The position numbers and the translations under genes are program-made. A stretch of DNA of 64,000 bases, taken from Lepidodermella squamata (Eukaryota > Animalia > Gastrotricha). This document shows positions 25,613-61,914 of the stretch, piece after piece. The notes under the pieces are model-generated. The model worked only from the letters and a program-made list of their open reading frames with translations. It was not told the DNA's origin and made no database searches. Within the stretch, counting starts at the first letter, position 1. Every line of letters starts with the position of its first letter. Location: assembly GCA_047495785.1 (NCBI GenBank), contig JBLDXI010000010.1, positions 310,001 through 374,000 on the forward strand, in the 5' to 3' direction.

Positions 25613-26018
25613 TTTTAATTCCTTCTAAAATGAATGAAAATCAAGGTGAGCGATGAAGTTAGGCAACGGGAATATTGATCAATTTTCTCAGGAAATTCGA
25701 TACGAGGCGCTGTCTTGCCTCATCACAACACGCGGCTATATGTAATCAGAGTCGAAAAAAAATTCATTGAATATCTTAAAAAAGAGCACGCGACTAGATT
25801 TTTCAGCATCGATAGCACCAGCTGGTCAGGCGGATTCATTTTTTCACTGCCATTTATAATCCACTAATGGAATCCGTGAGGCGGAAAGATGAAACAGCAG
25901 CTGACGTGGGGGAAAAAGGTTTTTTATTCGCATAAATTAAGCCGAAAAAGGCAAATTATTCAGATTTTAAAACAGTTCATCACTTCGCCAGCTCATCGTT
26001 GAAAATTTTTCCAATTTT

Positions 26019-34674: not shown

Positions 34675-37137
34675 TCATTCGTTATTTGTTTTGCACGAAT
34701 CATTTGAATATTTGAAACACCATTTAGGAGGCTGGCTTGCGTTGAAGCAAATCACTTTGCCAAGCTCGAACGCGGCATCCATGGCCTCTTTCAGGGTTTG
34801 TTCATTCTCCTCCTTGAGATGCCAGCAAGCGGCTGGGCAATGCAGCGCCGACAGACAATATTTAGTGGTTTCCGCATCAGCAGAATTCTCGAAACATATT
34901 CGAACTAAAAAAATAGAAAATGTTGTAATTTTTTTTGAAATGTTGCAATAAGTTAACTTACATGCGCGAATAGTTCTTGGTGGGAAGACAATAACAATAG
35001 GCTCATCGCTGATTTCAGGCAACTCTGATTTGTACAGAATTTCCCATTCGTCATCGTCATCGTACTTTGTCAGAACAGCTATCCTAGTCGAAATTCTTAA
35101 TCTGTGCGAAAAAGAGACCAGAAAAATCAGGAATTGTCTTATACTCACAAGGTGTGCAATATATTTATTTAATTTCACAACAACTTTGTGAGAAATTCAA
35201 CTCATTTTTTTTAAATGAAATCTCTCATTATTTATCCACGATTTCACCGACGAGATAAAAAATCTACCGAAGAAAACACGGCAAACCCCGATGGTAACTG
35301 GTTCGGTAATTTTCGGTATTTTAATTTTAATAATATTCGGGACTCTCATGTTAGAGTCTAATCCTTCTCCCGAGTATCTTCTTTGTTACATTACACCTGC
35401 TGATTGTAGGGTTACCGTAACCCTAAAAAATTTCAAGTGTTACTCAGGTATTTCATCAGGTAACTCAGGTAAATCAGGTTCGAGCCCTCAATTTTCAAAT
35501 GAATGTTTCCTGTCTTGATCAATAACAATAGAACCTATAATTTAGCTACTTGGCACCTTAAGGTATGAGGTATGCATATAAAATTTCAATGTTTGATTCA
35601 AAAGCTTCTGATATTCGAAAAATCACCGATTTGTAAAATCGATACTTGGAATCGATATTATCGGCATTACAGACCAAAATACTGCTCATGAACTGACCGC
35701 AAATTACGCATAATAGTGAGATATATTGGCGTAAAATAATAAATAAGATTCTTAAAAAGGCCTCAAAATCGAAAAATGTTGGGAGTCTCAAATTTGGGGA
35801 GTAAATTTTTTGAAATTTATTTGAAAAAAATCCTAATCGGGGTTTTAGCTTGTGAAATCTCCCTCAACTGGGGCCCCGTATCCTAATTCACAGATTCTCA
35901 AAATGTATCTAAATTCAAGCGAAAATTTACCAATTTGTTGCTGGTGTGGGACATTGATATCAAATTTGAAATAAACAGCAGAACTTACTCCTCATCGTAG
36001 TCGAGTTTGAAGGCGCCGAAGATGATTGAAGCCACAGATTGTTCTTTCGACAGGCGAAAGGTGAAGCTATTAGGATCAATTGAGTATGCATAACGGTCCA
36101 TATGATAATTTTCGAAGGATCCCTTTCTCAATTTACGTATCTGATACACTGGCGGCGAGTGCAATTGCCGCAAACACCAGTCATCCAACAAGTCCTGAGA
36201 CGCTACAATAAAGAATAAAAAAGATCAATAAATCGTTAATGAGCGATTTTATATTCTTACCTAATCGAGGTCTGCTTTGTATTGCTTCTGCTTTTTCCAG
36301 GTCGAAATTGTTGTCAGCTATCATCTTGTAAAGCGGCGCCATTTCAGCGAATGAAACTTCGAAAAAAGTGATGTGATAAAATCGAACCGCCGCTAAAATT
36401 GTTGCCATTTCGGCTCGATCGGCATCTCGATTTTTCGACCACCATCTCCCCACTGCGTACAGCAAGTGCGTTTCCTCTACTGCTAACGTGTCTTGGGACA
36501 AAATTTCCGCAACTGCTCGGGCAGGTAAGCTTTCGAATTCGTCGCTTGGAATGCAATCGGCTTGGAACACCGAAAAATATCGATGGCAATAATTCATGAG
36601 TTTAACGTCATTTAGCGCTACGGCAATTTCGAAAATTTTGAAAACTGTTGAATCGCTCAGAGTGTTGCCGAGGAAATGTCCCATGGCGTCGAATAGGCAA
36701 GAGCATTGGTACTCATCGGCGATTTTGTACAACTCAATCGCCGTATCCAGGCTCAGGCCTTTCACGTCGATTTTTCGCGTGTAAATAAATTGAAGGAGCA
36801 ACTCAAAAGCGCGGGGCGATTTGCCGGGGAGTGATATCGGCTCGGATTTGTTGACAGATTCCTTGAATTTGCCGCCGCATAGCATTTCGTTGAAGAAGGG
36901 CGACTGCAGGGCTAGAATAGCCCTATGCGCTCGGAATTCTTTATCGCCGACCAGGAAAACTACGTCAGAATTAAGCATTGTTTCGAGCAATTTCGGCAAT
37001 AAATCTTCGATTAAGTTGTCGCGGCCGTAGCAGTAAGTATCATCGGTGATGAATTTCGGTTCATTATCGCAGCATTCGGCTCTGGTTGCAGCTGAATCGG
37101 CTGAATCGAATAAATCTTCAGGAATTGAGGAAGGCAT
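34675..37137 (-). CDS. BTB/POZ-BACK domain protein (BTBD9-like), copy A, about 4 exons
   Basis: SDVVFLVGDKEFRAHRAILALQSPFFNEML, FELLLQFIYT, BACK motif LSQDTLAVEE. 3' exons are homologous to copies B and C. Confidence 0.8.
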
Positions 37138-38237
37138 TGTAGTTGTATTTAAAAATGTCGAAAATTCACGAAAAAGGAAATTGAACAAGTGCGCTAATTT
37201 ATTGCTCGCGCGTTCTTTATACGAAAGATGCGCGCATAACTAACTACGTGACCCATATTTAATTGCGTGTAACGGGTAACCAAATACCGTGTCGGTGTAT
37301 CTCTCACGGAAGCGAGCTATCTGTTACAGTCTATTGTTTCATTATCAGCGTCAAGAATAGAGCTAGATTTAATCTGAGTTCAGAGTTCAGTTCCGCGTTT
37401 GAAATCGCCGTCGTAGACTTTGCCTTTATAGCGTACGTACTTTAGCGTATGACATGCGTCATTTAGCGCAAGCATCAATTGCGCTAAAACCAGAGCTGAG
37501 TTAATAATTGATGACAGTTGCGCAAACGACAGCTGCTAAACACTAAAATGGGTCCTCGAGAAGCGTCGCGCGGATTAATTCGAAAAATCGCCTATAATAA
37601 AGATGTGCGCAAAGTAAATTTAATTGCCATTTTATTATGTACTACATTTTATATTCCTTATTATTTTCAACATTTATTTATTTATTAATTACCGTAATCA
37701 AATAATATCATTGTATCATACCCGAATCAAGCGACCGAAAATATATGAGACATTTATTTTTAGGGCGGCGAAATAGACCCTTTATAAAAGATATTTTTTT
37801 AAATCATTTTTTCAAGTTTTACTTCTATGACAGCTTCGACTCGCGGTTCCTTCTGGCCGACCTTCAAACTCGAATTACCGTCTCATTTCAAAGGCTCGAT
37901 TGGCATGAAAAAGATTTTATTTTACGACCTTTGCCCCTCGGCACTCGCGGCGCGTTGACTCATTTTTTAAAGATTTTAACGGAATATTCATGTTTTTTCA
38001 TTTTCCATCCTGAAATTCCATTTTTATTTAAATTTGGGGCGCATCGGGTTTTTTCGAGCCAAAATCATCGTAATTTCTCGGACGCTGTGGGGCCAAGTAG
38101 CCGATGAGCTGACCCGATTTTCAGATTTAGATCATCTAAATATTTATTTCTTAAAGAAATTTTTCAAAATTATTGTCATAATTATCGGAGATGCGCTGCG
38201 CTTTTGCGTTATTTTTATAACAGCCGAACTTGTTGTC

Positions 38238-38765
38238 CTACATCCATCCACACAGCTCCATGATCTCGTCATTCATCTCCTTAGCCAACTCCTCAGACAT
38301 AGCGCCCTCAGTTGTCAGCCCAATAGCGCGGTAATCATCCATGGTCAAGTCGCAAAATCCGTTGGAAACATAGCATGGAGCGTGGCCTTTGAATCCTGTT
38401 TCTTTTATCTGCGCGCACGTCATGTCCGGCTCGCCGCGTAGTAGCACCTCAATGGCTACGTATTCCTGCAGGCATTTGCGAGTCGCATCGACCCAAGCTT
38501 TGCCCTTTTCCGAGAACATGTCAATATTTTCGCCGAATTTCTCGCAATACGTCAGGCCGAAACCGATGGCGTAATCGTCATTTCCGGTGCCCGTGCACTC
38601 GGGATGGGCGGCTTCTAGGCATTCTTCGTACCAGATACAGTCGTTACCATGGGGCTGGTAGCAGTAGTCCGGAATAGTAATACTTGCATGTTCGTAAAAG
38701 CTTCTCGGGATTAACGAAGCAAAACTTGCTCCGAAAACTAGCGAAATTAAAAGAAAGACTCGCAT
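38238..38765 (-). CDS. Stanniocalcin-like secreted Cys-rich protein, copy 1
   Basis: Signal peptide MRVFLLISL. Pattern C.WY..CLE...C...Y...G..YC..F...W....KCLQ...C..IK...F..H..CY...FC. Confidence 0.7.
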   Translation of the reverse strand: MRVFLLISLVFGASFASLIPRSFYEHASITIPDYCYQPHGNDCIWYEECLEAAHPECTGTGNDDYAIGFGLTYCEKFGENIDMFSEKGKAWVDATRKCLQEYVAIEVLLRGEPDMTCAQIKETGFKGHAPCYVSNGFCDLTMDDYRAIGLTTEGAMSEELAKEMNDEIMELCGWM

Positions 38766-40023
38766 GTTGAAAAGGTAACTTGCGATAGCTGGAGTAATTG
38801 CGATTTTAATTATAAAGCGTCTGGTGTGAGAAACAGAAAAAAATCTCTCACCAAACATGGGTGCGGAATGCCCTAATTTTTCCCATTCTGAAGATAAGAG
38901 TGGGGCTATACTTGTATGGGGCTGCTTTTGTTATCAGACTTGCTCGTGTTTGTTTGTCCGCCAAGGAAGAAGTTCAGTTTGTTGGACTCTTTCTCGAACG
39001 GTCGAACTAAAAGCGTCACGTGCTGCACTTGCTGTGAAAAGGGTGGCGTTTTGCGTCCGTTAAAGTTAAAGTAGGAGATTGGCAATGGCTATTATACCCT
39101 ATTACTTTCAGCCATTTTATTTTTATGCGCATTTTGTTGTATGATTATTTGAAAGGTTCTAACTTGTTAAGCATACTTTAATTCATAAATACACAAAGTC
39201 TGAACCCAATAGGACACCATATGCAGTTTAGGTTCGGAAATGAAGCTTTTATGCAGATTTATGGCACCCTCGAGCGATTTTGAATTTCTGCCTTTTTTGA
39301 CTTTGAGCAACGCTGGCACTCTAATGGTGGGGAATTGGCTCCTGAGATTTTGTGGGCTTACTGGAATGGGTTCTGACTGTTCATGGTCAAAATTTGAGCC
39401 CGAAGAACCTCATGGCTATGGAGTGACAATCGTTTGATAAAAGTGGAAATTTTTTATGCAGGTAACCTTACCCAATAAGTATCCGCCAACTTTCAAGTTT
39501 CCAATCTCATGCGCCCGCTGTAATAAGAAGTGGCAACATGTATATTTCAGAACGAGCGTCACAGCCCTGTTTTTTGTGCTGCTTTTTTGCAACAGGCGTT
39601 TACTGTTAATAGTATAGTGAGGGTAGCAACAAACATTAAGATGTAACAGCATAAGCTCTTGCACGTCATCACAGTTAGGATTTTTTCATGAACCGGCAAG
39701 TGCGTCACCAGTGAAACAGCTATTCGGAAAAGTGTAACGTTCGTTGAAAACGTTGAATTGAACGCGCGTCATTCCGAATAGTCAAACGGCCAAAACATGA
39801 GGTAAACATGTTTATGGTCGGATTTGGCAAGCTTTTTCTGTTGTTTTGGCTGTTCGATTCCCATGGAACAACGCCAAGAAGAGCCGAGAGAAATCTATAT
39901 AAGCCCGTCACAGGGCTGCAGTCCAGCATCATTCTCTCAGCATTCAATTCTCAGCCTAATAAGCTAACAGCCAAACTTCAAAGGTTCTTATTTGCTTTCA
40001 CCTGCTACATTCAAATTTTAACG

Positions 40024-41091
40024 ATGCAATACGTATACTACGCAGCCGTCTTGGCATTTGCCTTGGTCTACATTGCCGGTTTGTCTAAATTGTTATTTTA
40101 ACTTTGTGTTTACTTAAATTTGCCTCTCTGCTTTGCAGATTGCGCTCCAGTCAATAATGACGATGATGACTGGGAAGATTTCAAGCGATCGAACAAGAAA
40201 GACTTCAGTGACAAGAATGAAGAGCGCCGCCGTCGTGATACTTTCAAGGCGAACTTGGCTCTCATCCGCAGCCACAATCAGAAGTCTGGCGCTTCTTTCA
40301 GTTTGGACGTCAATGACCTTGCTGATCTGAGCTCGGCTGAGATCGCGGCAACTCGACTTGGTGCTAAGGTTCCACTGGGCGAACAGCTGCTCGTTAGTGC
40401 TGCCCCTTTTGTCGAAGCGATTGTGTCAGCAGCTCTTCCTGCTAGCCTCGACTGGCGCAACAAGAGCGCAGTTACTCCTGTCAAGAATCAGGGCTCATGT
40501 GGATCCTGCTGGGCCTTTTCATCCACGGGAGCTCTCGAGAGCCGATTCAAGATCAAATCTGGCAACTTGATGTCATTTTCTGAGCAAAATCTCATGGACT
40601 GCACGTGGTCTTACGGCAACCAGGGCTGCAATGGTGGCTGGATGAATTCAGCTTTCGCCTACGTCAAAAACGTCTCTGGCATCAACTTGGGTTCCGCTTA
40701 TCCTTACACGGGTGTTAGCAGTCACACTTGCAAGTTCAACGCAGCTGCTCGCTACGCCAGCATTACTGGCTTCACCAACGTACAGAAGAACAACGAAACC
40801 GCTTTGATGGTTGCCCTGCAAACTGGCCCGGTTGCCGTCGCCATCAACGCCGGTTTGAGCTCCTTCCAATTGTACAAGTCCGGAATTTACAATGACGCAG
40901 CCTGTTCGACCTCTATCAACCACGCTGTGTTGGTTGTTGGCTACGGCACGGATGCAGCAACGGGCAAGAACTTCTGGATCGTGAAAAATAGCTGGGGAAC
41001 CGGCTGGGGTGACAAGGGTTACATCCGCATGGCTCGCGGGTCGAACTTGTGTGGCATTCTCAGCTATGCTAGCTATCCGAATATGGCCTAG
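40024..41091 (+). CDS. CTSL: Cathepsin L-like cysteine protease, 2 coding exons
   Basis: Exons 40024-40078 and 40139-41091. ERFNIN-type propeptide, QGSCGSCWAFS, INHAV, KNSWG. TATA box at ~39896. Confidence 0.93.
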
Positions 41092-41582
41092 GCTTATGGA
41101 AACTGGGACTAGCTAGCTACCTGCCAACTGTTGGCAATCGCGATATTTAAATGCAAAACCTGGTGATATGACTGTTATTTTGGGGATCAATTACAATTTT
41201 GGATATACCTATATCTATCATAGTTTCTTAAGAAATATTATCGAAATGGCCCTCGCTAAAATTATCAATAAATAATGGAAACTGAAATCTTCGCTCAACA
41301 TCCTAATTACTCCAAGGTGTTGAAAACGGATTCGATTTGTTCCCCATATTGCACCCAGGCTTGGTCATGGGTTCCAACGTTGCTTTTCCTATCTGAACGG
41401 ATCCGAGCAAAATTTTCCGAAACGAATGATATCAGAGCAAAGGGGAGATGGTTTCTTAATACTTTTCGTTCAAAAGATTAACTTCGGTGGGTATAAAAAA
41501 GCAATAGTAGAATAATTATTTATTTCTCTCTGAGATAATTTTCAAAAATAACAGAGATCCGCTGTGCTATTTTGCGTTGTGT

Positions 41583-42134
41583 TTACCGGCCCAACTTGAA
41601 CTTTTCCTCCCACTCCGGCCCACACAGCTTCGCAGTCTCGGCCATCTGCTCAATCATCTCCGGCGACATACTGTCCTTAGTTATCCACATGACAGCAGCG
41701 TAATCAGCAATAGTCAAGTCGCAAAATCCGCTGGAAACATAGCACACAGGGTGGCTTTTGAAGGCTGTATCCTTAATCTGCTTGCAAGTCATCTCCTGGT
41801 TGTCGCTTGACAGCACCTCATCGGCCAGGACTTCCTGCAGGCATTTGCGAGTCGTGCCGACCCAAACTTTCCCCTTGGCGGAGAACTTGCGAAGGCTGTT
41901 GCTGAATATCTCGCAGTACTTTTTGCCGTAACCAAGAGCGTAATCGTCGCTTCCGGTGCCCGTGCACTCGGGATGGGCGGCAGCTAGGCATTCTTCGTAC
42001 CAGATACAGTCATTACCATGGGGTTGGTAGCAGTAGTCCGGAATAGTAATACTTGCATGTCCGTAAAAGCTACCCGGGATTACCGAAGCAAAACTTGCTC
42101 CGAAAATTACCGAAATTAACAGAAAGACTCGCAT
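41583..42134 (-). CDS. Stanniocalcin-like secreted Cys-rich protein, copy 2
   Basis: Paralogue of 38238-38765 with the same Cys pattern. Confidence 0.72.
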   Translation of the reverse strand: MRVFLLISVIFGASFASVIPGSFYGHASITIPDYCYQPHGNDCIWYEECLAAAHPECTGTGSDDYALGYGKKYCEIFSNSLRKFSAKGKVWVGTTRKCLQEVLADEVLSSDNQEMTCKQIKDTAFKSHPVCYVSSGFCDLTIADYAAVMWITKDSMSPEMIEQMAETAKLCGPEWEEKFKLGR

Positions 42135-42610: not shown

Positions 42611-44694
42611 TCAGGTGTTAAGACTTTCCGACTCCACTGGCTCTGTGCTAGCGAATTTGAAGCTCCATTTTGTCGGCTTCTCTTTGTCAAATCGAACGGC
42701 TTTTCCTTTGGCAGTAGCTATCTCCATTTGCTCTCTTAGCGCGTCGCTCGACTCCAAGTTGGCCGGGCACTTCAGAGCAGACAAGCAATATCGGGTGTTT
42801 CCGTTTCCAGACGGCTCAAAACCAATTTCGACTAAAAGCCGATTTTCAAAATGTAGATATTCAATTGAGTTCATAAAATTTTTACTTACTCGCACGAACT
42901 TTACGAGGCGGAAAAATGATGACTATCAGCTCATCAACTTTTTCCGGGGCGGCTGATTTGTAAAGAAGTTCCCATTGGTCATCTAGTTTGGCTGCAACAG
43001 CTATGATCGCTGGAATTCTGTTCCTGTTTAAAATTCAATATAAAATTAAAATTTTACTAAATCATCAAAGAAAATACATATCGATTTGTTATCTTACTGG
43101 ACTTTATTATTTAAATTTTTAAATATTTAAAATGAATCCAAATATCTGTACCACTTCGATTGAAGTTCGACCCCTAACTTTCCGCTAAATTTTTCCGATT
43201 CTTTGCAATTTAGGCTTTTCATTTTTTTTATTGACTTTATTTACACTGGTAATTTTGATCGATATAGCATCGATAACAACCTAGGATTTTTTGTTTAGGA
43301 AAAAGCAATCAAAAACAGAAAAAAATCTGATCAATCGGCTTGGCCAGAATTTGGATCCGGTGATGGAACCCTTAATTTAGGGTGTCCACATTGCTCAATC
43401 TTACGAAGTAGCCCAGGAAGTGAAAATACATGCAAATACAAAACTTGCCCACGCTCGAGTTTGAAGGCTTTGAATTGCAGCGAGTCGATGAAACAACCGC
43501 GTTTGAAAGTGAAACACGAATCGGTGCATGAAGCAAATTCATCCGGAAGACGGCTGAAAATATGCTCGGCATCATCCAATATTTCGTCTTCAAGCTGTAC
43601 CAGATGATTCATTGTGATGCAGGCTTCGAAACCACTTTCTGAACGAGAAGAAATAATAATCAGATGGCTGGCAAATATACGGAAATTGAGGATGAAGAAC
43701 GTAAAATTGAAGTTTAACAATCTTTTTTTTGAAAATCGCGATAAATTCTAAAAAATCACGTTCCTATTTATAATGGAAACATCGGAATTTGTAAGTCCAA
43801 TATAAATTTACCTATACGATCGTCCTGTTCCAAAGACACATTTTCCACGTCGAAATTGTTATCAGCGAACATTTTGTAAAGTGGCGCGTATTCTCCGAAA
43901 GATAAATCCACGAAATTGAAGCGAAAGAAGCGCAACTCTTTGAAAATTTTAGCCATCTCGTAACTGCTGACTTCAGGATTTTTCACGCGCCAATCGTTAA
44001 CGGCAAAAAATATCTCCATCTCCTCTGATTTCAGCGTGTCTTTTGATAGAATATCAACAAGAGCTGAAGCTGACAATCGGCTGAACCCAGGCTTGCGGAA
44101 AATTAAATCGCCGCAAATTGAAATAAATCGATGGCACGATTCCAAGAATTTCGCATCCTTCAGTATCAACGCAGCTTCAATGACATCGTAAATCGAGTCG
44201 AAAGACAGCGTTCGGCTTAGGAAATTCACCATAGCATCGTAGAGACACGTAAACTGATACTCATCTGCCATTTTAAGGACTTCGATCGCCGTGGATAACG
44301 CCAAATTTTTTACTTCGATCCGCCTCGTGTAGAAAAATCTGAGAAAATGGTCGAAGGCTTCGGCGGATTTGCCAGGTAATTCGATAGGATCTTGGGGGTT
44401 GATGGATTCTTTGAAATTGCCGCCAAGTAGCAGCCGTTCCAAGACAGGCGATTGAATCGATAAAATAGCTCGGTGGGCTTGGAATTTACGGCCTCTGACT
44501 ACGAAAGTCACATCGGTGTTGTAGGAATTTTCGTAAAATTTGGCCATAACTTGGTCGCAATAGCTGGATTGAGCGTAGCAGTAAAGTTCATTACCGACCA
44601 GTTTTGTATCGCCATAATCGAAATTCGTTTCGTCCTTTCCCGAAGCTTCCGATGGCTGGGTTAAATCGAATACCTCCCGTAAGGAGAAAGGCAT
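42611..44694 (-). CDS. BTB/POZ-BACK domain protein, copy B, about 4 exons
   Basis: TDVTFVVRGRKFQAHRAILSIQSPV. Last exon RYCLSALKCPA. Confidence 0.8.
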
Positions 44695-45235: not shown

Positions 45236-46981
45236 TCACTTTCTATCGCCGTTTCTCTTGAAAATGACCGGCTTTTCCTTGTCGAGGCTTGATCCGACCA
45301 GAAACTGCTCGTCTAAGGTTAAGGCAGCCGGACACTCGAGACTCGTTACACAAAACCGTGAATTAGAAGTAGAGCTGACTTTGTCTGGCATCAATTTTAC
45401 TGTTAAAAAGGTAATTAACTGCAGAACATTTTCGGGTAAAAAAACATACTGAATTGAAAAATAAGCGGCTTGAAGATGACTACGACTCGGCTGCTGTAGT
45501 TTTCCTTAGCATCAAAAACACATAACTGAGTCCAAATTTCGCCATCCATCGAGGTTGAAACAGAGAATCCTGTAGTGCCTCTGGACCTGTAATGAAAAGA
45601 TTTAAAGACTTCCGTTCTATAATAATTTTGAAAAATTATTCATGACTAACCAAGTTACTACTGGATATGATCCATATGGGTCATCCATATGTCTCTTGAC
45701 CTGTTTGAACACTTCGAGCCCAATCGAATCGGCCCGAATCGGCTCTGGCAGCTTGACGATTACGTAGCCATTACTCGAGGTAGTGTAGGCGAATTCTTTC
45801 GAATTCGGATAGAAAGCACCTTCAGGATTTTTCACTTCGCGGTCATTCATAACTTTAGCTCCATTTTCGGCACGCACGATTCGATTTTTGCGCGCTGAAA
45901 TTCCAAATTACAAGAATTACAAAAAAATTAAATGGATAAAAATTAAAAAATAATTATTAAATTAATTAATTTAATAATCAATTTATATATTTCAAAATTG
46001 AGATTTTACACTCAAATGTGACAACCATCAAGAATTACAACCAAACAATAAAATGAAATTGTTAAGCTTACTCAGTCTAAGATTTGTTGCCCTGTTTCCC
46101 CCCGAACTTCCAAGTTCGGCTAAATTGACATTATTATCAACCAGTAACTTGTACAATGGCGCCAGTCGGTCGAAAGTCATGCCAGTCAAATCGATGAGCC
46201 CGAACCGAACCTTGGATAGAATTTCAGCCATTCCGCTAGCATCAGCAGCCTGATTTTTAGCCCGCCACCGGGAGACAGCGAGCAGAACTTCGATTTCCGG
46301 AGCACTCAACGTATCTTGGGACAGAATTTCGACTACAGCTCGAGGGCTTAGCGATTCGAAGTCGGGATTTGATAGAATTCCGCTACCGTCAATCGCTATG
46401 AACTTTTGAAAGGAATTCAAAAGATTTTCATCGTTGACCAATAGAGCTGCCTCAAGAAGTTTAAAGACAGTTTCCATGGTTACCAAACCAGCCAGCAGAT
46501 CAACTAACGACTTGTAGAGAATCGAAGTCTCGTATTCATGGGCCATGAGCAAAATTTCGATCGCCATGTCTAGGGTCAGCTCTTTGACAGCCAATGATCG
46601 GGTGTAGAAAAATGTGAGAAATGGCTTGAAAGCTCGAGCGGTTTTTCCTGGTAAAGGAATGGGATCGGTTTTATCGACTGATTCCTTGAAATTGCCACTG
46701 AGTAGCAATTTTTCGAAAACAGGAGATTGAACGGCTAAAATTGCGCGATGAGCTTTGAATTGTCGCCGTTCAACGATGAAAGTCACATCAGCATACAGGC
46801 CTTCGTTGAACAATTTTTCGGTGACATCGGTGAAATAACTACTCCGTTGAACGATGTCACGAGAGTTGAGAAGCTTGGGAGAAATTGCGGGCGAATTTTC
46901 ATCAGAATTCGTATGGCCATTTAGCGATGATTTCTCAGCAGGGTCTCCAATCGGCGATGTGAATAAATCAGCGATCATCAT
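45236..46981 (-). CDS. BTB/POZ-BACK domain protein, copy C, about 4 exons
   Basis: ADVTFIVERRQFKAHRAILAVQSPV. Last exon RFCVTSLECPA...DRK* ends at 45236. Confidence 0.8.
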
Positions 46982-48814: not shown

Positions 48815-50710
48815 TGGTGTGGCGACAATTGATCAAGCGACTATTCAACATGCGACAGCTCCGTGCGACAATTCGGCAAACGTCAATTTGACACATGAAA
48901 TTTTAGGGATCGAAAACGACAATTCGGCAAACGATTATTGAGCAGGGTGTCCAATTTCGACAATTCGGCAAAACGGCAACTCGACGTGATGAAAATCACT
49001 AATATGGGAAAACGACTGAACTTGGCAGGAATAAATTTCTGTCACGTTAGAGAAAAAGTGATTAAATTTATTTATTTATTTATTTATTTAGAAGCTATGA
49101 CACCCAAGAGAGGGCAGCTTGACAATGTTTGAAGGAAAAAGCAACAGATAATTTCAGGACAGGTTCAGATTTAGGACAGGAAAAGTGAACACAGTAAGAG
49201 GAGACAAAGGTTTGGACCATTCATCGTTTTAATATGTAGCAGTGATCAGTCAACAATTTGGATCAGTAGTACATAAGTAGTGTGTAAAAATAATAAAGAT
49301 AATATTAAAACAAAATCTCAACAACTTCATAAAAATAGAGTGCTATCAATTTATTAAAGTGCTAAACTAGAGGCATTTTTGTTGTAGAAAAAAGCGTGAG
49401 CAATTGAACGGCATATGTCAGCTGACTCGGCCTGCCGTGCCTCAATAGGCAGTTGATTCCACAGTTCGGGACCTCTGTAACTCAGACTAAGCATTTCTCG
49501 TTTTTAGTCGCATTTCGGCTTGAACATAGGTTCGGAATTTCGAACCTCGTATCGGGGAGGCGGGTTCAGACAAAAAAGCGCTTGAATTGCAGCCGGTGCT
49601 TGCTTGTTAAGGCACTTCCATATGAAGGTGACCAGGTGAATGGCGTGTTTTGTTCTACGTCAACCCAGCCAAGGCGATGTCGCAGTGGTTGAGCATCAGC
49701 GAGCGGATGAGCGCCACAAATAACTCGAACTGCTCGGTCTTGCGTCGATTGAAGCCTGGCCAGTGTGGTCGGGGCAGCTTGGCCCAAAGTTAGGTCACCG
49801 TAATTCAAGTGACTAAATATCAAACCATTGGCCATTAAGATAGCAGTCCTACGACTTACGAACTTCGAGGCCAGCTTGAGAGCAAACACACCTCTTCTTG
49901 CTTTGCTTTTGGCACCATTTATGTGCTTTTTGAAAGACAGTTTATTGTCGATCGTAAAGCCAAGTGTCACCATTTCACTTGACGGCTTAACTATTGCGTC
50001 GCCGATTTTAATACAGAAATCCGGAGCCGTAGGCATCGCGCATTTCAATATCAAAAATTGCGACTTTTTACCGTTAACCTGCAAGGAGTTGGATTTCAAC
50101 CAACAACAAACCCGATTGATTTCCTGTTGAAGAACCGATCTGAGTTCGTTGACGTTCCGACTGGCGAAATAAATTGTTATATCGTCTGCTTATTGTTCGA
50201 TTCCGCAGCGCGTAACGACGAGTGATAGTTCATTTACGTACACTGTAAACATAAGTGGCCCTAAAACTGAGCCCTGAGGCACACCATGGTGAATTTCTTC
50301 GAAGGCAGATAGTGCGCTGTTAATCTTTGTACCCGAGAACGGGACAAAATGTAATGTCCTACATTGAGCAGGAATATCAGGGGTAAAAAGGCTATGCGAG
50401 CGGAGCGAGCATGACCATTCTGACTCTGTAGTTTTTACCTCTTATTTTATGTGTACTATGGCCTCGAAATTTGATATCTATAGCTAATGCTCAGTTGTCG
50501 TTTCAGTACGAGTGATTTATCGAGTTTTCTTCTGCCGAATATTGTCGCTTGTCGCTCAATGGTACGTTGGATTTTCACTGCCGATTAGTCGTTTGCCGAG
50601 TTGTCGTTTTCGATCGAATAACGAAATACTGACGAATTGACGTTTGTTGTTTGTTGAGTTGTCGCTGCCGAATTGTCGTATTTCCAGTTGTCAATGCTCA
50701 ATTGTCATAC
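48815..50710. mobile_element. Degenerate DNA element with inverted arrays of subterminal motifs, hosting a LINE fragment
   Basis: CGACAATTCGGC-like motifs at 48820-48980 and GCCGAATTGTCG-like motifs at 50490-50710. Confidence 0.55.
49066..50330 (-). mobile_element. 5'-truncated CR1/L2-group LINE (degenerate RT C-terminal part, 3' UTR, (AAAT)n tail)
   Basis: HGVPQGSVLGPLMF, EQ*ADD (YADD disrupted), LGFTIDNKLSFKKHI, YRGPELWNQLP. Confidence 0.88.
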
Positions 50711-51083: not shown

Positions 51084-53648
51084 TTACAAAAGGTTGAAAT
51101 AATTCAAGAATAGAAACAAGATAAATATGCGTTTTGACAGGTCACTAATTAATTGATTGGAACAAGATGAATTCGTTCGACTTGCTCCTCGCGACCTCAG
51201 CAAATCGGCCAAAACACTATCGTTTAGGCTAATCGCCCAATCGAGTGCTGACTTGCCAGTTGCATCTCTGGCATCTTTATTCGCACCTCTATCCAGCAAC
51301 AGTCGAACTACTTCAAGGTACCCATTCGCAGCCGCAACTAGCAACGCCGTCGAGCCATTTTTCTTCTTGGCATCGATGGCAGCATCCCGATCCAGCAACA
51401 GTCGAACTATTTCCAGTTCCCCATGCGAAGCAGCAATCATCAATGCCGTCCAGCCATCGTTATCCTTGGCCTCGATGGCAGCGTTGCGTTCCAGCAACAG
51501 TCGAACAACTTCCAGTCGCCCATTCGCAGCCGCAACTAGCAACGCCGTCCAGCCTTTTTTATTCTTGGCATCGATGGCAGCATCCCGATCCAGCAACAGT
51601 CGAACTATTTCCAGTTCCCCATGCGAAGCAGCAATCATCAATGCCGTCCAGCCATCGTTATCCTTGGCCTCGATGGCAGCGTTGCGTTCCAGCAACAGTC
51701 GAACAACTTCCAGTCGCCCATTCGCAGCCGCAACTAGCAACGCCGTCCAGCCTTTTTTATTCTTGGCATCGATGGCAGCGTTTCGATCCAGCAACAATCC
51801 AACCACTTTGACCTGTCCAAAACGCGCCGCAACCGTTAACACCGTCGCGCCATCTTTTTGTTTGGCCTCGATGGCAGCATTCCGATCCAGCAACAGTCGG
51901 GCAACTTCCAATTGCCCATTCCCAGCCGCCCACATTAACGCCGTCGTGCCATATTTATCCTTGGCATCGATGGTAGCGTTGCGATCCAGCAACAGTCGAA
52001 CAACTTCCACATGACCATTCGCAGCAGCTGTCATCAATGCCGTCCAGCCGTCGTTATTCCCGGCCTCGATGGCAGCATTCCGATCCAGCAACAGTCGAAC
52101 AACTTCCACATGACCATTCGCAGCAGCTGTCATCAATGCCGTCCAGCCGTCGTTATTCCCGGCCTCGATGGCAGCATTCCGATCCAGCATCAGTCGAACA
52201 ACTTCCACTCGCCCATTCCCAGCCGCCAACATTAACGCCGTCGTGCCATTGTTATTCTTGGCCTCGATCGCAGCATTCCGATCCAGCAACAGTTGAACAA
52301 CTTCGAGGTGCCCCTTTAAAGCCGCAACCATTAACGCAGTCACGCCCTCGTTAGTCTTGGCTTCGATGGTAGCATTCCGATCCAGCAACAGTCGAACTAT
52401 TTCCAATTCCCCATTCGAAGCCCCCAACATTAGCGCCGTCGTGCCGTTGTTATTCTTGGCCTCGATGGCAGCATTCCGATCCAGCAACAGTCGAACAACT
52501 TCCACTCGCCCATTTGCAGCCGCCCACATTAACACCGTAGTGCCATTGTTATTCTTGGCCTCGATGGCAGCATTCCGATCCAGCAACAGTCGAACAACTT
52601 CCAATTGCCCATACCAAGCCGCATCCATCAATGCCGTCCAGCCAGCAAGATCTTTGGCTTCGATAGCAGCCTTGTGGTCTAGCAACAGTTTAATGATTTC
52701 CAGTTGCCCATTCGAAGCCGCAGTCATCAATGCCGTCATACCATTGTTATCCTCCCTGTAATTCGTATCAGCTCCACGATCCACTAACAGCTGAGCAATT
52801 TCCAATCGCTGGTTCGATTGCACCGTATCGCACGTAACGCTGTGTAGCAGAGTGCCGTTCATCGTATCCCCATCACCACAGTAATAAGGCTTTGGGTTGC
52901 GCCAGTTCGGGTCGAATTTGCCGCCAGTGGATTCGTCGATCTCTGCAACGAGTTGCCGCACCTGCGCTACGTCGTCCGTGGAGTATGCTACATTCCACAA
53001 CTGTTCGTATACTTCGCTGATCTGAAAGTAACAAAAAGAAATTGAGATTCCCGGAGAGAATGATCGCTTAGTGAGGAAACTGGTGAAGCCGAAAACTTTT
53101 CATAAATGTTATCCTGCTAACAGGAATCGCCCGCTAATAATAGATACGCAGTAATATGAAATTGCCTATATTTACGGATCCGCTCGTGCACATTGATATC
53201 GTTATGATAGCTTCTGTTTAATAGCAACTATAGCAAGTAGGTTATCACTATTCGGGGCTTAAAAGAGATTTGGCTTAAAAATTGACAAAAAGTATTCTCG
53301 AGTTCGGCTGAAAGCGAAACGAAGGCCGGTATTTTAAATAAATCTTGCTAGCTTTAGTCTCTAGCCCTGTTGCACTTCGCTATATAATGAAAAAAGCTCA
53401 GCTATTTTCTCGACGTGGAAATTCGAGTTGGCAAATTCAAGTCTCTTGTGAGTGGAAATTCGAACTGCAAAGAAAGTGGTAAACGCCTTGGCTGACGCCG
53501 ATTATAATCGAGCAGCTGATAATAATCACCGTAACGCTGTGATAATATTCACTCTGATTGATCTTCGTAGAAAACTTACAGGTCTTTCCTGCCTCGTGAC
53601 GCAAGAAGCAGGCTGGAAGACGATTATAAATGCAATGAGAAGGAGCAT
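51084..53648 (-). CDS. Ankyrin-repeat protein with signal peptide and C-terminal GPI-like tail, copy 1 (668 aa, 2 exons)
   Basis: Exon 1 53648-53580 encodes MLLLIAFIIVFQPASCVTRQERP followed by gtaagt. Acceptor ttcag precedes 53021, phase 0. 15 internal 33-aa repeats plus caps. Ends SRTNSSCSNQLISDLSKRIFILFLFLNYFNLL. Confidence 0.88.
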
Positions 53649-54379
53649 TTTGAAAATTTTACAAGCAAAGCGGAGATATTACTAACAAAAGCCTCACAAA
53701 TCTTTCTTCGTGTGCGTGTGGACCTCCTAAGTGTATTTTTCTCTTTCCCTTTCTCTTTCAGTAATATAGATGACATACACGTGTAGAACACAATATTCAA
53801 AGCCTGTAACAGCAATTCTCAGCGGAGAAAAAACTCAGGCTATATCATTGTTAACATCCGGATCAAAAGCATGAACTCAGACCTAAAAGCCTGAATGTGA
53901 AAATTGTCGACCTACCTAGGTTCCCCTGATCTAGCGTTTTTATTTATCTATGCATTTGAGATAGATGAAGTTTAAGGGCTTTTAATTTCATGATTTGATA
54001 CCCCATGGAGCTTAATAACGCCAACACATCGAGTAAGCAGATCTCAAAGCGTCCACAACAGCGCACACATCTTCGAGTAGGCACGTTCAACGTCCCGGAG
54101 AACATTTTTCCGAGGAGATAAGAGGTTGGTATGTTGAGTACGATGGCTATGCTAAAAAGCAGGACGTCGCCGCTAAGCAGACAAACGAATTTGCCGCTCA
54201 GGAGTCAAAGTTGTCCACGGCGAAACGGCCAAAGTTGATTGTAACGATATCCTGAAAAAACCCTAAAAAAATCCGCGCATTTGAGACCCGATGTCATGCA
54301 TCCGTGCTCGGCGCTCGGCGACGCTTGGGTTTGCCTTGTTTTCCCTCTTTGGTAGTGATTATTCACTGTTCTTATTTAG

Positions 54380-54760
54380 ATGCATGACAAAAGCGATCGC
54401 CGACGCAATTGAAACCGTATGAGGTCCGGATATGGTCCAGGCCAACTGCTGGCCCCACGTAACACGTAATTACGACAAGCGCCTGTTATGGAAGAAAATC
54501 CGAACGACCGCGAAAACAAGAAAGAAATGGCCGTAGCGCGAAGCAAACATCAGTCCGTTTGATGGTTTCATTGGTTGGCCGATATGATCGAGTATTTCAG
54601 ATATTTCGGAGACCCGTTCATAAACTCAGCTACCATGGGAACGAGAATGCCGTGCCCGACTGTCCGGCCACTAATAACACTATCGAGTCACTCTATTTCA
54701 AAAGCAGTCCGTAAAACGTTGATTAGAAATGACGACGAAGTTATGCCTTTCTGGTCTACT
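54380..54760 (+). mobile_element. Decayed MULE/Mutator transposase fragment
   Basis: KAIADAIETV*GPDMVQANCWPHVTRN (CxxH motif) and a later TNNTIES motif, with stops and frameshifts. Confidence 0.6.
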
Positions 54761-55169
54761 TTCCGGCGGCCTAATGTCGGTGCTGATTTCAAGAAGAACG
54801 GGTTCCATCTATCTGGGAAAATTGATGAGAAGTTTCCTCGAAATATGAAAATTTAGGCAGCCAACGGTTTTTTCGCCGAAGACCAGATCGTCATGGGGGT
54901 CTACGTATGGCGAAACTGAGAACCGGAGAATACGAAGCATCTGTTTTCCACTTATTAGCATAGTTTGGCGATATAATTTCAATAATATCGGGTTTGCTAT
55001 GTTCTGCTTTAGCTCTGCGACAAAACTATCAAATTTTGCGGCTTTTGTGAGAAGTGAAGTGCGCACGGATGAATTTCTTCTGCGCGACACTTTCAATTAT
55101 AATGCTCGCGTTATTGAATTGAATTGCGCGACGTTTTGGGCTCCTCTCATATTTGTTGGTGATATCAAT

Positions 55170-55866
55170 TCAGGGGCTGAGACCTTCCGACTCCGCTGGC
55201 TCTGTGCTAGCGAATTTGAAGCTCCATTTCGTCGGCTTCTCTCTGTCAAATCGAACAGCTTTTGCTTTTCCTGTGGCAGTAGTTATTTGCATTTGTTCTT
55301 TGTTTTCATTGTTGACCAATAACGCTGCCTCAAGAAGTTTGAAGGCAGTTTCCATGGTTACCAAACCGGCGAGTAAATAAACCAACGACTTGTGACTTGT
55401 GGAGAATCGAAGTCTCGTATTCATGGGCCATGAGCAAAATTTCGATCGCCATGTCCAGGGTCAGCTCTTTGACAGCCAATGATCGGGTGTAGAAAAATTT
55501 GAGAAATGGCTTGAAAGCTCGAGCGGTTTTTCCTGGTAAAGGAATGGGATCGGTTTTATCGACTGATTCCTTGAAATTGCCACTGAGTAGCAATTTTTCG
55601 AAAACAGGAGATTGAACGGCTAAAATTGCGCGATGAGCTGTGAATTGTCGCCGTTCAACGATGAAAATCACATCAGTGTACAAGCCTTCGTTGAATAATT
55701 TTTCGGTGAAATCGGTGCTTGACAATTCTGCCTGACGATATCGCGAGCGTTGAGAAATTTCAGAGAAATTGAGGGCGGATTTTCATCAGAATTCGAATGT
55801 TCATTCAGCGATGATTTCTCTGCAGGGTCTCCCAGTCGGTGCTGGGAACAAATCAGCGATCATCAT
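55170..55866 (-). pseudogene. Chimeric BTB pseudogene (copy C exon 1 fused to copy B last exon)
   Basis: 55303-55866 matches 46425-46981 and 55160-55300 matches 42600-42735. Frameshift from a 7-bp duplication at 55387-55400. Confidence 0.88.
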
Positions 55867-57087
55867 TTCTGGTAAAGGTTGCTGATCTTTAAAAAAATTG
55901 AAATGCCCGACATTGAAAAAATCAGCTTTTAATATCATTGTATTTGAAATTTTGGCACGCGATGAATGATGAATGGGGCCGCATGTTTGAAATCTTGCTA
56001 GATAAGCACCAGCTGTTTAGCTAAATTTGTTTAGTTAAAATAGGTTTCCATTTTCATTCTGGAATCTCATGGCTTCATACCTATAGTGAAATGGGTCAAC
56101 AAAGTCCAACATCTTTTGCTCTTTATTTTTAGAACTTCATGGGTTAGGGATTCCCGCCGTGAAGTCGGCCACTCTGCCAGCGTGGTGAAATTATAGAAAA
56201 TATCCGGCCATACAGAATTATAGAGGAGTTTTTGGCTATCGAATGTCGGTATCCGCAAGTCCGGATGATTCTGCCATGATTCATGGCTCATTTCATAGTC
56301 ACCTGGAGGTCACCTGACGGAATTTGGCAGCCGGGTGCCCAAATTCTGGCCACCTCATCCAGTTACGCTAAAACCTTATAAGTTTGATACCGTTAAATTC
56401 GTCTCGACAAGTCGAGTGTGGAAATCGCCTTTGTTGCTGTACCTGTCAGCCTTTTCCTTGACAACGTGATGCCTGAACGTCTGGTGTTTTTTGTAACGAA
56501 GCACTTTGGAAACGGCATGAGCCCCATTCAGAATTCCATTCAAATCATTGACAGCCACACGCATGGAATCTGCTACCCCGCTGTAAGGATCTGCCGGCTG
56601 GCATCGTGCCATCGAACTAACTAGCTTGTGATAATAATCATGTGTCATGTGATCATCAATTAGGCAACGCCATGTTCGCTGTAGTTATTTCTATATGATA
56701 TTTAAGGCCATGAATGGCAGATCCTCAATGTTCGATTCATTCACAATAAAGTATAGAGTAGTGCCTGGCCAAGTCTTGATGTTTCCCTGACACCCGCATA
56801 GGCCTTGACACGTTTGAAATGGTATAATTTAAAACCTGAAAAGCAATGATTTTACCACAATGAGTTGGAATTCATGCTCCTTTTCGATCTACAGGGGATC
56901 TTCGTGATAGTTTGGACCTCTAGATTTGATATAGTATTCATTAGTATTCATTATAATCCTAATCAGGTAGATGTAGTTTATTAGGCATGTGCTCTACTTT
57001 CCGCATCGCATTTCAAAAATATGTATTCCTGTACAAAATGTTTTACTCGATTATAGACTACAGCCGATTAGTTAGGATTAAAGGTTG

Positions 57088-57499
57088 CAAGGAGCAAGTG
57101 GTCGAGCGGTCCAAGCACCTCACTGACGGCGAAGAGGCACGGGTTCAATACCCAGAACCGCAACACCAATCATTCCTCTACGCATTGAATGCGGCGTTTC
57201 TGGGACCGTTAATCAAGCTGACAGGAAGACGTGTCGCCGACGACCACAATCCTCGAGTGCGTACCTGCTGGTAACACCGCCAAGCAAATCCACCCGTGAC
57301 CGCGGTTTCCTCCCTCCCGGTGTAGGACGCCATTCACCGGCAATCAAGATATGGCTACTCAGCACGCAAAGTCTGGGGACCATGGTTCGACCATCAACCA
57401 TGGGAATAGTGGACTCATAAGCCTTGTGATGATGTCTGATACCAAATGCTAAATGTCGAAAGGCAACTTGCATGAATAAAGAGTATGAGTATGAGTATG
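57088..57499 (+). mobile_element. tRNA-derived SINE
   Basis: A box TGGTCGAGCGG at 57099-57109, B box GGTTCAATACC at 57142-57152, AATAAA then a (GAGTAT)3 tail, possible TSD AGGTTG. Confidence 0.75.
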
Positions 57500-57531
57500 A
57501 GGTTGTATTTTATGTACATTTATTATAGGTG

Positions 57532-60423
57532 TTACAAAAGGTTGCAAAAATTCAAAAAGAGAAATAAGATTAATATGCGCTTTGACTCGTTACTAATTAA
57601 TTGATTGGAACAAGATGAATTTGCTCGACTTGCTCCTCGCGATCTCAGCAAAGCGGCCGTAGCAGTACTGTTTAGACTTATCGCCCAATCGAGTGCTGAC
57701 TTGCCATCAGCATCTCTGGCATCCTTATTCGCACCTCTATCCAGCAGCAGTCGAACAACTTTCACTTCCGCATCCGAAATCGCAAGCTGCAACTCCGTCA
57801 TGCCAGTGTTATTCTTGGACTCGTTGGCAGCATTACGCCCCAGCAACAGTCGGAAAGCTGCCATTTCCTCATTCCAAACCGCCCAAATCAATGCCGTCCG
57901 GCCGTCGCTACTCTTGGCCTCGATGGAAGCGTTGCGATCTAGCAACAGTCGAACAACTTCGACAAACACATTTCTAGCCGCCCAAATCAACGCCGTCTTG
58001 CCATCATTATCGCTGGTCTCAATGGCAGCGTGGCGATCAAGCAACAGTCCAACTACTTCGAGGTGCCCCTTTAAAGCTGCATTCATTAACGCCGTCACGC
58101 CATTGTTATCCATGGCGTCGATGGCAGCGTTGCGATCTAGCAAAAGTCGAACAACTTCGACATACCCATTTCTAGCCGCCCAAATCAATGCCGTCTTGCC
58201 ATCATTATCTTTGATCTCAATGGCAGCGTTGCGATCCAGCAACAGTCGGGCCGTTTCCACTTTCCCTGCTGCAGCCGCAGTCATCAACGCCGTCCCGCCA
58301 GCAGGATCCTTGGCGTCGATAGTAGCGTTGCGATCCAGCAACAGTTGAACAATGTCCACTCGCCCTGTCGAGGCTGCACACGTCAACGTCGTCCAGCCAC
58401 CAGGATCCATGGCGTCGGTCGCAGCGCTGCGATCTAGCAACAGTCGGACCGCTTCCACGTGCCCGTTCAAAGCCGCCAACCTCAACGCTGTCCGGCCGTC
58501 GTAATTTGTGGCTTCGATGGAAGCGTTGCGATCCAGCAACAGTCGAACTATTTCCTGTTGCCCATTCTCAGCCGCATACATTAACGCCGTCATGCCGGTG
58601 GAGTTATTTTCGGTCTCGATGGAAGCGTTGCGATCCAGCAGCAGTCTAACTACTTCGAGGTGCCCATATAAAGCCGCAATCATCAACGCCGTGACGCCAT
58701 TTTTATCCTTGGCCTCGATGGAAGCGTTGCGATCTAGCAAAAGTCGAATAGCTTCCACTTGTCCTTTATAAGCCGCAATCATCAATGCCGTCCAGCCATC
58801 AGATTCTTTGGCCTCGATGGTAGCGTTGCGATCCAGCAACAGTTGAACAATGTCCACAAGCCCATTCGAAGCCGCAAGATGCAACGGCGTCCAGCCATTT
58901 TTATTCTTGGCATCGATGGCAGCATTGCGATCCAGCAACAAACCAAGTATTTCAAGTTGCCCACTTCTAGCCGCCAACATCATCGCCGTCCAGCCGTCGT
59001 AATTTTTGGCCTCGATATCAGCATTGCGATCCAGCAACAGTCGAACAACTTCCACTTGTCCATTATAAGCCGCAATCATCAATGCCGTCCAGCCAGCAGA
59101 TTCTTTGGCCTCGATGGTAGCGTTGCGATCCAGCAACAGTTGAACAACGTCCACAAGCCCATTCGAAGCCGCAAGATGCAACGACGTCCAGCCATTTTTA
59201 TTCTTGGCATCGATATCAGCATTGCGATCCAGCAACAGTCGAACAACTTCCATATGCCCATACGCAGCCGCACACATTAACGCCGTCGCTCCATTGTTAT
59301 TCTTGGCCTCGATGGCAGCCTTGCGGTCTAGCAACAGTTGAATTAATTCCAGTTGCCCATTCCTAGCCACATACATCAGCGCCGTCATGCCATATCTAGT
59401 TTCTCTGTAATTCGTATCAGCTCCACGATCCAATAACAGCTGAGCAATTTGCAATCGCTGGTTTGATTGCACCGTATTGCACGTAACACTGTGTAGCAGA
59501 GTGCCGTTCATCACATCCCCATCACCACAGTAATAAGGGTTTGGGTTGCGCCAGTTCGGGTCGAATTTGCCGCCAGTGGATTCGTCGATCTCTGCAACGA
59601 GTTGCCGCACCTGCGCTACGTCGTCCGTGGAATATGTTACATTCCACAGCTGTTCGTATACTTCGCTGATCTGAAGTAACAAAAAAGAAATTGAGATTCC
59701 TGGAGAGAAAGATCGTTCAGAGAGGAAGATGATGCAAAAAACTAGACGAAATTATTTTTCAGATCACAAATTTTCATAACAAATATCATGATACCAGGAA
59801 TCGATTTACTAATCCGCTGTGTTTCCTCTGGCTACTACAAAGTAGTTTTGTGGCTCAGTTTTCATTAAAATTATAGCTTGTAAGCGATTGTTCGATCTCA
59901 AGTTAAACGCGTAAAATGCATCGTTGCGACTCTGCGCAACATTGAAAAAACAATGCAAAACTGTAATCCGCACTTTCTCGTTAAGGTGAAAGATCGGAGT
60001 ATAGCTCATGTCTACAAGAAGTTGATATTTTTCTCCAAGAGTGAAATTATAACAACAAGTCGTTTACTAACAAGTTGTGCACATTTATTTCGGTGCGGTA
60101 GCTTCTGTTTTGCAGTAACTATAGCAAGTACATATCAGGATACATATCACCATTCAGGGCCTAAAATGATTCCCTTTGGCTCTACTCTCTAGCCGTGTTG
60201 CACTTCGTTATACAAGAAAAACGCTCAGCTTAATTTTTCTAAGTGCGAATTTGAGTTGGCTGACTCCGATCATAATCGAGTAGCTGAGAATACTCTCCGT
60301 AACGCATTAATAATCTTCAATCTTCACTCTGATTGATCTTAGTAGAAAACTTACAGGTCTTCGCTGCCTCGGGACGCAAGAAACGGGCTGGAAGACGATT
60401 ATAAAAGCTATGAGAAGGCGCAT
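57532..60423 (-). CDS. Ankyrin-repeat protein with signal peptide and C-terminal GPI-like tail, copy 2 (735 aa, 2 exons)
   Basis: Exon 1 60423-60355 encodes MRLLIAFIIVFQPVSCVPRQRRP followed by gtaagt. Exon 2 is 59670-57532. 17 internal repeats. Ends SRANSSCSNQLISNESKRILILFLFLNFCNLL. Confidence 0.88.
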
Positions 60424-60956: not shown

Positions 60957-61914
60957 ATGTCACAGTGGGGTATCGCTAACAAAGTCTGCATGGTGACAGG
61001 CTCTAACACAGGCATTGGTAAAGCCACAGCACTTGAACTTGCAAAACGTGGCGCTGCGAAAATTATTCTTGCATGCCGCAATGTCAAAGCCGCCGAAGAG
61101 GTTGCTGCGGAGATCAGGTCAAAAATTGGAGCAACAAAAGCCGAATGTGTTGTGGCAAAGCGCTTGGACCTGTCTTCTCTTGAATCAATCCGCAAATTTG
61201 CGGCGGATATCAACCAAAACGAGCCGGCTTTGAATGTTTTGGTTAACAATGCTGGCCTTGAGCAGCCTGAAAAGACGCTGAGTGCTAATGGCTACGAGCT
61301 TACTTTCGCCACTAATCATTTGGGTTATTGTGATTTGAGTACAACCTACACGCTCAATTGAAATTTCTGTTTCAAACTCAGGCCATTTTCTTCTGACAAA
61401 TTTGCTGACCGATTTGCTGAAAAGATCAGCACCAAGTCGGGTTGTTAATGTGGCATCTATTATGTATATGGCAACTTGGCCTTCCGGGTTGGATGTCGAA
61501 GATCATTTCCAAGACAAAAGGTCCTATGGTATGTGGCGAGCATACTGCCAATCAAAACTCGCGAATATTCTTCATGCAAGGGAGCTACATCGAAGGTTGA
61601 ATGGAAGTGAACCTGGCAATGCGCCAAGTTCGGGCGTTTCTGTGTTTTCGTTGCATCCTGGCGTAGTCAAAACTGATTTCTTGCGCTACCGGACAGGCTA
61701 CAGTGCATCCTACATGCGCTTTTTGGTTTCCTACGGTTCGACTGTGGAACAGGGAGCTAAGACGAACGTGTATTGCGCGTGCCAACCGGGGATCGAGAAG
61801 CATTCTGGATTGTATTTTGACGAATACGGCGTGAAATCCACATTGGCTATCGCCCGTGATGATGTCAAGGCTAAAGCTCTGTGGGAGCTGAGTGAGAAAC
61901 TAGTTGCGAAATAA
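60957..61914 (+). CDS. Short-chain dehydrogenase/reductase, retinol dehydrogenase 11-14-like, 2 exons
   Basis: TGSNTGIG, NNAG, FATNHLG|HFLLT across intron 61324-61381, YCQSK, LHPGVV. Confidence 0.92.

Follow-up and report, generated by a model that had tools for sequence, protein, structure and literature searches.

Two related ankyrin-repeat genes, A and B, lie on the minus strand of a 64 kb stretch of the genome of the gastrotrich Lepidodermella squamata (contig JBLDXI010000010.1, positions 310,001 to 374,000; this whole stretch is referred to as the window, and coordinates count from its first letter). Both genes are germline-complete in the assembly, and we propose, with a probability of about 0.6, that they are paralogues encoding surface binding proteins that are built of ankyrin repeats and held by a glycosylphosphatidylinositol (GPI) anchor. 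A sequence-only reading of the same DNA had described them as surface GPI ankyrin proteins with a variable face, and that description draws support from the leader, the tail, an excess of N-glycosylation sequons, a pair of cysteines in the cap and contigs that resemble RNA. The genome comprises 122 Mb in 157 contigs, with 43% GC and 2.99% heterozygosity, and the paper describing it does not mention ankyrin (PMC11660948).

Exon structure, leader and tail

The ankyrin open reading frames (ORFs) had been taken to start at splice acceptors, with a 69 nt first exon and an in-phase gtaagt donor upstream, and in both genes the sites, the phase and the open frames agree (Table 1). Both start codons have the context AAA-ATG, both donors are gtaagt directly 3′ of exon 1, and the acceptors follow pyrimidine runs (ending cttcag at 59670 in A and tttcag at 53021 in B); the joined frames are free of stops over 735 amino acids (aa) in A and 668 aa in B. 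There are in-frame stops 5′ of both acceptors, and residue 77 is the first methionine within exon 2 of either gene. Exon 2 thus requires a first exon, since the frame is closed upstream of the acceptor and the first internal methionine comes only at position 77.

The leaders have several features of signal peptides. First, when both strands of the window are scanned for candidate exons of 15–40 codons running from an ATG to a phase 0 GTRAG donor, only two of the 20 candidates are hydrophobic, and these are exon 1 of A and exon 1 of B. Second, no other 9-mer in either protein is as hydrophobic as the one in its leader (Kyte-Doolittle value 3.6–3.7), which surpasses 94% of a control set of 112 cathepsin N-termini. 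Third, the hydrophobic core is followed by Q-P-x-S-C, which fits cleavage behind Cys16 (predicted motifs after V-S-C in A and after A-S-C in B), and both leaders fit the rules for signal peptides, with a hydrophobic core, a proline and small residues at −3 and −1. The linker after the leader carries a furin-like RQRR in A and none in B. Exon 1 had also been called conserved. It is 88% identical between A and B, without indels, and its hydrophobic core has two silent and no replacement changes; however, the DNA as such is no better conserved than its flanks (82–88%) and the neighbouring pair of BTB genes (91%), so that DNA conservation alone is little proof.

Contigs of two sequencing runs bear on expression: X1, from 2024, and X2, an independent run of 2015 that is RNA by guess. 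The X1 contigs are DNA-like, covering introns (including that of gene A) and flanks. X2 behaves as RNA would: exon 2 is covered, and between 59741 and 60800 the depth is zero. Compared with A, X2 contigs 16 and 11 have 47 and 30 mismatched letters, and because these are exactly the differences between A and B the contigs are assigned to B; all 31 of the differing letters listed match B. The cap, first repeats, tail and stop of gene B are present letter for letter, and if X2 is RNA, exon 2 of B is transcribed. The hydrophobic tail is not spliced out, an outcome that would have spoken against the earlier description, as the RNA-like contigs of B keep both tail and stop. Two half-depth X1 contigs match neither gene, one in the array (58215–58525, 29 differences in 311 nt) and one at the acceptor (59646–59812, 16 differences plus gaps); at about 9–10% divergence, against 3% heterozygosity for the genome, they suggest a second allele that has diverged or a third, closely related copy. 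X1 contigs at exon 1 and at the tail have double depth, which is not used here as a measure of copy number. That A and B are copies without function, or that they arose as an artefact in assembling amplified DNA, is largely refuted and exceedingly improbable: the assembly probably derives from amplified single-animal DNA (PMC11660948) and B contains a perfect 198 nt duplication, but the two genes are diverged and open, they are under purifying selection, and B is present in the independent 2015 run.

The elements that had been noted in the two proteins, namely the cysteine pair, an NGT-type sequon at N78, NSSCS, a spacer and a terminal hydrophobic stretch, are all found in both A and B. The tail has the same layout in each, a short polar linker being followed by NSSCS, a polar spacer of 12 residues, 14 hydrophobic residues and the stop. 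Candidate omega sites are N707, S708 and S709 in A and N640, S641 and S642 in B, giving propeptides of about 26–28 residues, and both genes fit the rule for GPI signals (a small-residue omega site, a polar spacer, a terminal hydrophobic stretch and no cytoplasmic tail). By sequence rules only, GPI anchoring of A and B is likely. Alternatively, the proteins could be extracellular with the tail unprocessed, either secreted or held loosely in the cuticle, the glycocalyx or an adhesive secretion. Such an arrangement would account for a hydrophobic stretch of just 14 aa that contains two asparagines and never stands out in a 19-residue hydropathy window; but in each gene the small-residue triad, propeptide length, spacer and hydrophobic run agree with what the GPI rule asks for, and the tail is conserved in frame and in character, and we consider this alternative unlikely.

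Both proteins have independent signs of passage through the endoplasmic reticulum (ER). Gene A encodes 16 sequons where shuffles lead one to expect 5.8, and B encodes 9 where 4.6 are expected, an excess whose significance is overstated because the repeats are related to one another and the sequons are not independent events. The reversed motif occurs five times in A and twice in B. In a comparison with 164 ankyrin arrays from the database, the array of A is denser in sequons than 99% of them and that of B denser than 96%. The C-cap retains a sequon in both genes with differing residues (NST and NDS). Cysteines are absent from the internal array of B and number two in that of A, and in mature B the cap pair would be the sole cysteines, provided that the omega site is at or before S642. 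An extracellular location is very likely, as far as such rules can indicate. It seems improbable that the proteins are cytosolic, with the acceptor receiving a spliced leader, translation starting at Met77 and the product being held by a tail anchor or, in A, by CaaX prenylation. The Met77 shared by both genes, the CaaX-like CNLL at the end of A and the unseen exon 1 junction speak for this. However, a consensus donor and an in-phase hydrophobic ORF lie upstream in both genes, and the stretch of 53 codons ahead of Met77 is open, has 96% identity between the genes and is modelled within the solenoid; furthermore, the expressed gene B ends in FNLL, so that the CaaX cysteine is not conserved, and the excess of sequons has no cytosolic rationale.

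Cap, repeats and their evolution

The two proteins are ankyrin solenoids of 33-residue repeats, as seen from their Pfam matches and modelled fold. Meaningful Pfam scores are obtained for ankyrin families only (Ank_2, E values of 4.5e-185 and 5.3e-132 for the two proteins). A single-sequence structure model has a mean predicted local distance difference test (pLDDT) score of 69, with low values of 37–62 in the cap, and aligns from its first residues to ankyrins and designed ankyrin repeat proteins (DARPins) with Z scores up to 19.9. The array is preceded by only about 90 residues, which are modelled as ankyrin-like caps, with helices at exon 2 residues 2–9, 18–32, 55–66 and 69–88; the N-cap corresponds to two degenerate ankyrin repeats and includes a hairpin loop some 10 residues above the usual length. 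Cys71 lies in this extended loop, and Cys87 ends the next inner helix. A disulfide between them is plausible, since a standard ankyrin fold would place both on its concave side.

Searches for a homologue of the cap among clustered proteins, metagenome and prokaryote contigs and Atlas features returned generic ankyrin matches or none, and among 1.84 billion representatives searched no best stretch begins before query residue 43. An exact look-up of eight proteins of the window in the protein collection gave no entry. When database matches are ranked by identity, several of the best are NACHT/HET ankyrin proteins of fungi (50–56%). Horizontal transfer of the array was considered and set aside: ankyrin arrays close to the consensus converge, and best matches in fungi and bacteria are therefore no guide to origin.

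Variation within the array is concentrated on one face. Per-position entropy is highest at positions 1–3 and 5 of the hairpin and 10, 13, 14 and 16 of the helix, and concave-face sites reach 2.1–2.9 bits where most scaffold sites are below 1.5. Ratios of replacement to silent change (dN/dS), from parsimony counts on a tree of the repeats, are 0.46 for the framework (p = 4e-9) and 1.36 for a wide set of face positions that was partly chosen from the data (p = 0.02); tail and cap, compared between A and B, have ratios of about 0.4–0.5 based on few changes. Purifying selection acts on the scaffold and the caps; the binding face is free or mildly diversified, with positive selection only suggestive.

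The repeats have also been duplicated and rearranged. Only the first and last repeats of A and B pair by position, and the inner ones are out of order (A3 and A6 with B11 and B13, A2 with B3, and A4 with B2). Repeats A3 and A6 have just 2 nt of difference, B11–12 and B13–14 are identical across 198 nt, and the late repeats of A decay from the consensus. Site compatibility is greater for nearby than for distant sites (p = 0.001), as recombination predicts. The cap is 96% identical between the genes and its silent divergence of 0.065 is lower than the value of about 0.2 at the ends, suggesting that it may be kept alike by conversion.

The pair of BTB copies indicates that A and B arose by tandem duplication of a unit of ankyrin gene plus BTB gene. 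The co-duplicated BTB copy has seven indels in 640 nt, and both ankyrin frames are intact across about 2 kb. This copy belongs to a cluster of single-ORF BTB(-BACK) genes, all on the minus strand (36181–37188, 43768–44694, 46028–46981 and 55303–55939); it is truncated, and a 190 nt stretch of it is almost identical to the intact copy, a possible trace of conversion. The interval that separates the intact BTB gene from gene B contains a remnant of a non-LTR (long terminal repeat) reverse-transcriptase element, recognized by eye (49566–50099, minus strand), and just 3′ of gene A is a repeated element of high depth in both X1 and X2 (57200–57500). On the other side of gene A, in head-to-head orientation, is a gene named by resemblance as short-chain dehydrogenase-like (60957–61914, plus strand), about 530 nt from the gene A start codon; a shared promoter is possible.

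The proposed route to the cell surface has six steps. First, exon 1 would be spliced in cis to exon 2, as the sites indicate. Second, the 16 aa leader, by the rules for such sequences, would direct the chain into the ER. Third, the chain would be N-glycosylated and Cys71 could pair with Cys87 of the neighbouring inner helix. Fourth, the tail would be cut near NSS and a GPI put in its place. Fifth, a solenoid of 18–20 repeats would stand on the outer membrane, its concave face binding external ligands; as there is no cytoplasmic part, the protein could act in adhesion, capture or as a decoy, or work with a co-receptor. Finally, unequal crossing-over and conversion between 99 nt units would alter how many repeats there are and in what order, leaving caps and scaffold unchanged; repeats have been duplicated and shuffled, and such exchange in the germline would renew binding specificity.

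The first five of these steps are shared by the alternative that the proteins are anchored at the surface and yet structural or endogenous in role, serving in cuticle or scale assembly, in adhesion, as an elastic spacer or as a scaffold for secreted enzymes. The variability of the face would then reflect relaxed constraint and ordinary turnover of 99 nt repeats, in keeping with a face dN/dS near 1 and the decay of the late A repeats. A fixed scaffold with the concave-face sites most variable is nonetheless unexpected of a structural protein, and the pattern of variability is that of fungal NOD-like receptor (NLR) arrays (PMC4986451), making a structural role rather doubtful.

Several observations count against GPI-anchored binding proteins with a diversified face. 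First, of the RNA junctions that had been predicted, 60355/59670 in A and 53580/53021 in B, none is seen, the contigs examined being those on the gene A region only, with 15 of the 87 joints listed; the tail and stop of B were found. Second, exon 1 of A has zero X2 depth and gene A itself is not evident in X2; the missing exon 1 signal may have other causes, since exon and leader of B could miss the 85% cut-off and coverage declines towards the 5′ end. Third, the hydrophobic tail is short and the sequon excess is inflated, as described above. Finally, the six DARPin positions chosen a priori have a dN/dS of 1.26 with p = 0.11, and recombination biases such counts. If the proteins do bind ligands, foreign surface proteins of microbes or parasites may be the likeliest, a guess to which we give somewhat less than even chances. 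Immunity, symbiont recognition and allorecognition, which the sequence-only reading had named as possible roles, are speculative. A bolder and rather improbable idea is that this lineage has shifted an ankyrin cassette with a disulfide-bonded cap to the cell exterior, and that recombining GPI-anchored ankyrin arrays form a germline repertoire of non-self receptors, a third scaffold for variable recognition at the surface beside immunoglobulin and leucine-rich repeat (LRR) domains.

Feature positions and other genes of the window

Table 1. Features of the ankyrin genes A and B and of the associated BTB copy
Feature	Position	Strand	Description
Gene A exon 1	60355..60423	minus	69 nt, 23 codons; predicted 16 aa signal peptide and 7 aa linker
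Gene A intron	59671..60354	minus	684 nt, GT-AG, phase 0
Gene A exon 2	57532..59670	minus	Cap, 17 internal ankyrin repeats, C-cap, tail, stop
Gene A N-cap	59392..59670	minus	Cys71 (59529), sequon N78, Cys87 (59481)
Gene A internal array	57706..59391	minus	17 x 33 aa, residues 117–678
Gene A GPI-signal-like end	57532..57621	minus	Hydrophobic stretch 57576–57535, then stop; rule-based
Gene B exon 1	53580..53648	minus	69 nt, 23 codons; predicted 16 aa signal peptide
Gene B intron	53022..53579	minus	558 nt, GT-AG, phase 0
Gene B exon 2	51084..53021	minus	Cap, 15 internal repeats, C-cap, tail, stop
Gene B cap cysteines	Cys71 at 52880, Cys87 at 52832	minus	Within exon 2
Gene B perfect 198 nt tandem duplication	51366..51761	minus	Repeats 11–12 = repeats 13–14
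Gene B GPI-signal-like end	51084..51173	minus	Candidate omega sites, spacer, 14 aa hydrophobic stretch, stop
Frameshifted BTB gene copy	55303..55939	minus	91% identity with intact BTB-BACK gene 46028–46981

Elsewhere in the window, an inverted duplication (6656–8117 and 13495–14956) is 99.7% identical across 1462 nt; each arm contains a 150-codon ORF with no Pfam match, the duplication is either recent or possibly an amplification artefact, and a zinc-finger reverse-transcriptase element lies between the arms (9831–12779, minus strand). Single-ORF ligand-gated ion channel genes, two in tandem and apparently intronless, are located at 20005–22318 (plus strand, with a Neur_chan_LBD match) and at 2952–3647 (minus strand). 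A cathepsin-L-like gene lies between two genes for stanniocalcin-like secreted proteins (a weak Pfam match, E value 2e-4), which are on the other strand (38238–42134). Two tandem multi-exon genes resemble, by eye, members of the MBOAT/hedgehog-acyltransferase family (23230–27939, minus strand), and a gene at 17883–19784 (plus strand) matches DUF7492 weakly and has a Thr-rich linker as well as a C-terminal domain that is repeated, with a related stretch at 5917–6400.

Comparison with known systems

The genes had been likened to natural DARPins or to variable lymphocyte receptors (VLRs), and the first comparison is fair for layout; the second holds for layout only, with no sign of somatic assembly. 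Lamprey VLRB likewise consists of a signal peptide, a Cys-containing cap, repeats with a variable concave face, a C-cap and a GPI-type end without a cytoplasmic tail. However, its modules are LRRs, whereas A and B match ankyrin families only, and they have neither its long Thr/Pro stalk nor its Cys-rich multimerising tail. In the germline, VLR genes exist in incomplete form, and cassettes are joined to them somatically. In contrast, A and B are complete, and self-comparison of the 64 kb reveals no separate ankyrin cassettes elsewhere; some somatic change on top of this is conceivable.

To our knowledge, ankyrin repeats of animals are treated as intracellular modules, with the latrotoxins a notable exception. 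If our proposal is true, an endogenous family with signal, sequons, Cys-bearing cap and GPI-type end would show that the scaffold is also usable on the surface of animal cells. Should microbes select the variable face, the family would offer a model in which diversified recognition can be tested, in a phylum without described immune receptors in the searchable papers. Literal phrase searches of an incomplete library found nothing on a signal–ankyrin–GPI family, the precedent that the sequence-only reading had asked after, or on gastrotrichs together with ankyrin. Among 271 database ankyrin proteins none convincingly combines a eukaryotic leader with a GPI-type tail (two passed crude thresholds); several exported ankyrin proteins of bacteria do have signal-like N-termini (e.g. 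P0147, P0184, P0337 and P0340). The latrotoxins are animal proteins with about 22 ankyrin repeats that bind receptors extracellularly (PMC13611351), but they are soluble venom toxins with large pore-forming helical domains at the N-terminus, and A and B have none before the array. Oomycetes have an expanded family of secreted ankyrin effectors with signal peptides, one of which needs its signal peptide to act; these differ in being non-animal proteins that a pathogen sends to its host, and in the portions of the report available they are not described as GPI-anchored (PMC11139960).

In evolution the genes resemble the ankyrin arrays of fungal NLRs, in which near-identical repeats vary in number and in their hairpin and inner-helix sites (PMC4986451). 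A and B share the near-identical repeats and the same variable sites; against the fungal criterion for repeat conservation of 85% over 100 aa (PMC4986451), B reaches 95% and A falls short at 80%. Fungal NLRs are, however, cytosolic and carry NACHT/NB-ARC and effector domains, whereas A and B have no such Pfam match and have an export signal and an anchor-type tail.

The likeness to DARPins is one of design. A DARPin is made of an N-cap, two or three internal consensus repeats and a C-cap. A and B have the same order of N-cap, consensus repeats and C-cap and vary at the same positions (2, 3, 5, 13, 14 and 33), and the extended hairpin loop of their cap recalls the LoopDARPins. Unlike DARPins they are natural, have 15–17 internal repeats in place of two or three, vary also at positions 10 and 16, and contain glycosylation motifs and a cysteine pair; as natural ankyrin caps compatible with secretion, theirs would be of interest for binder engineering.

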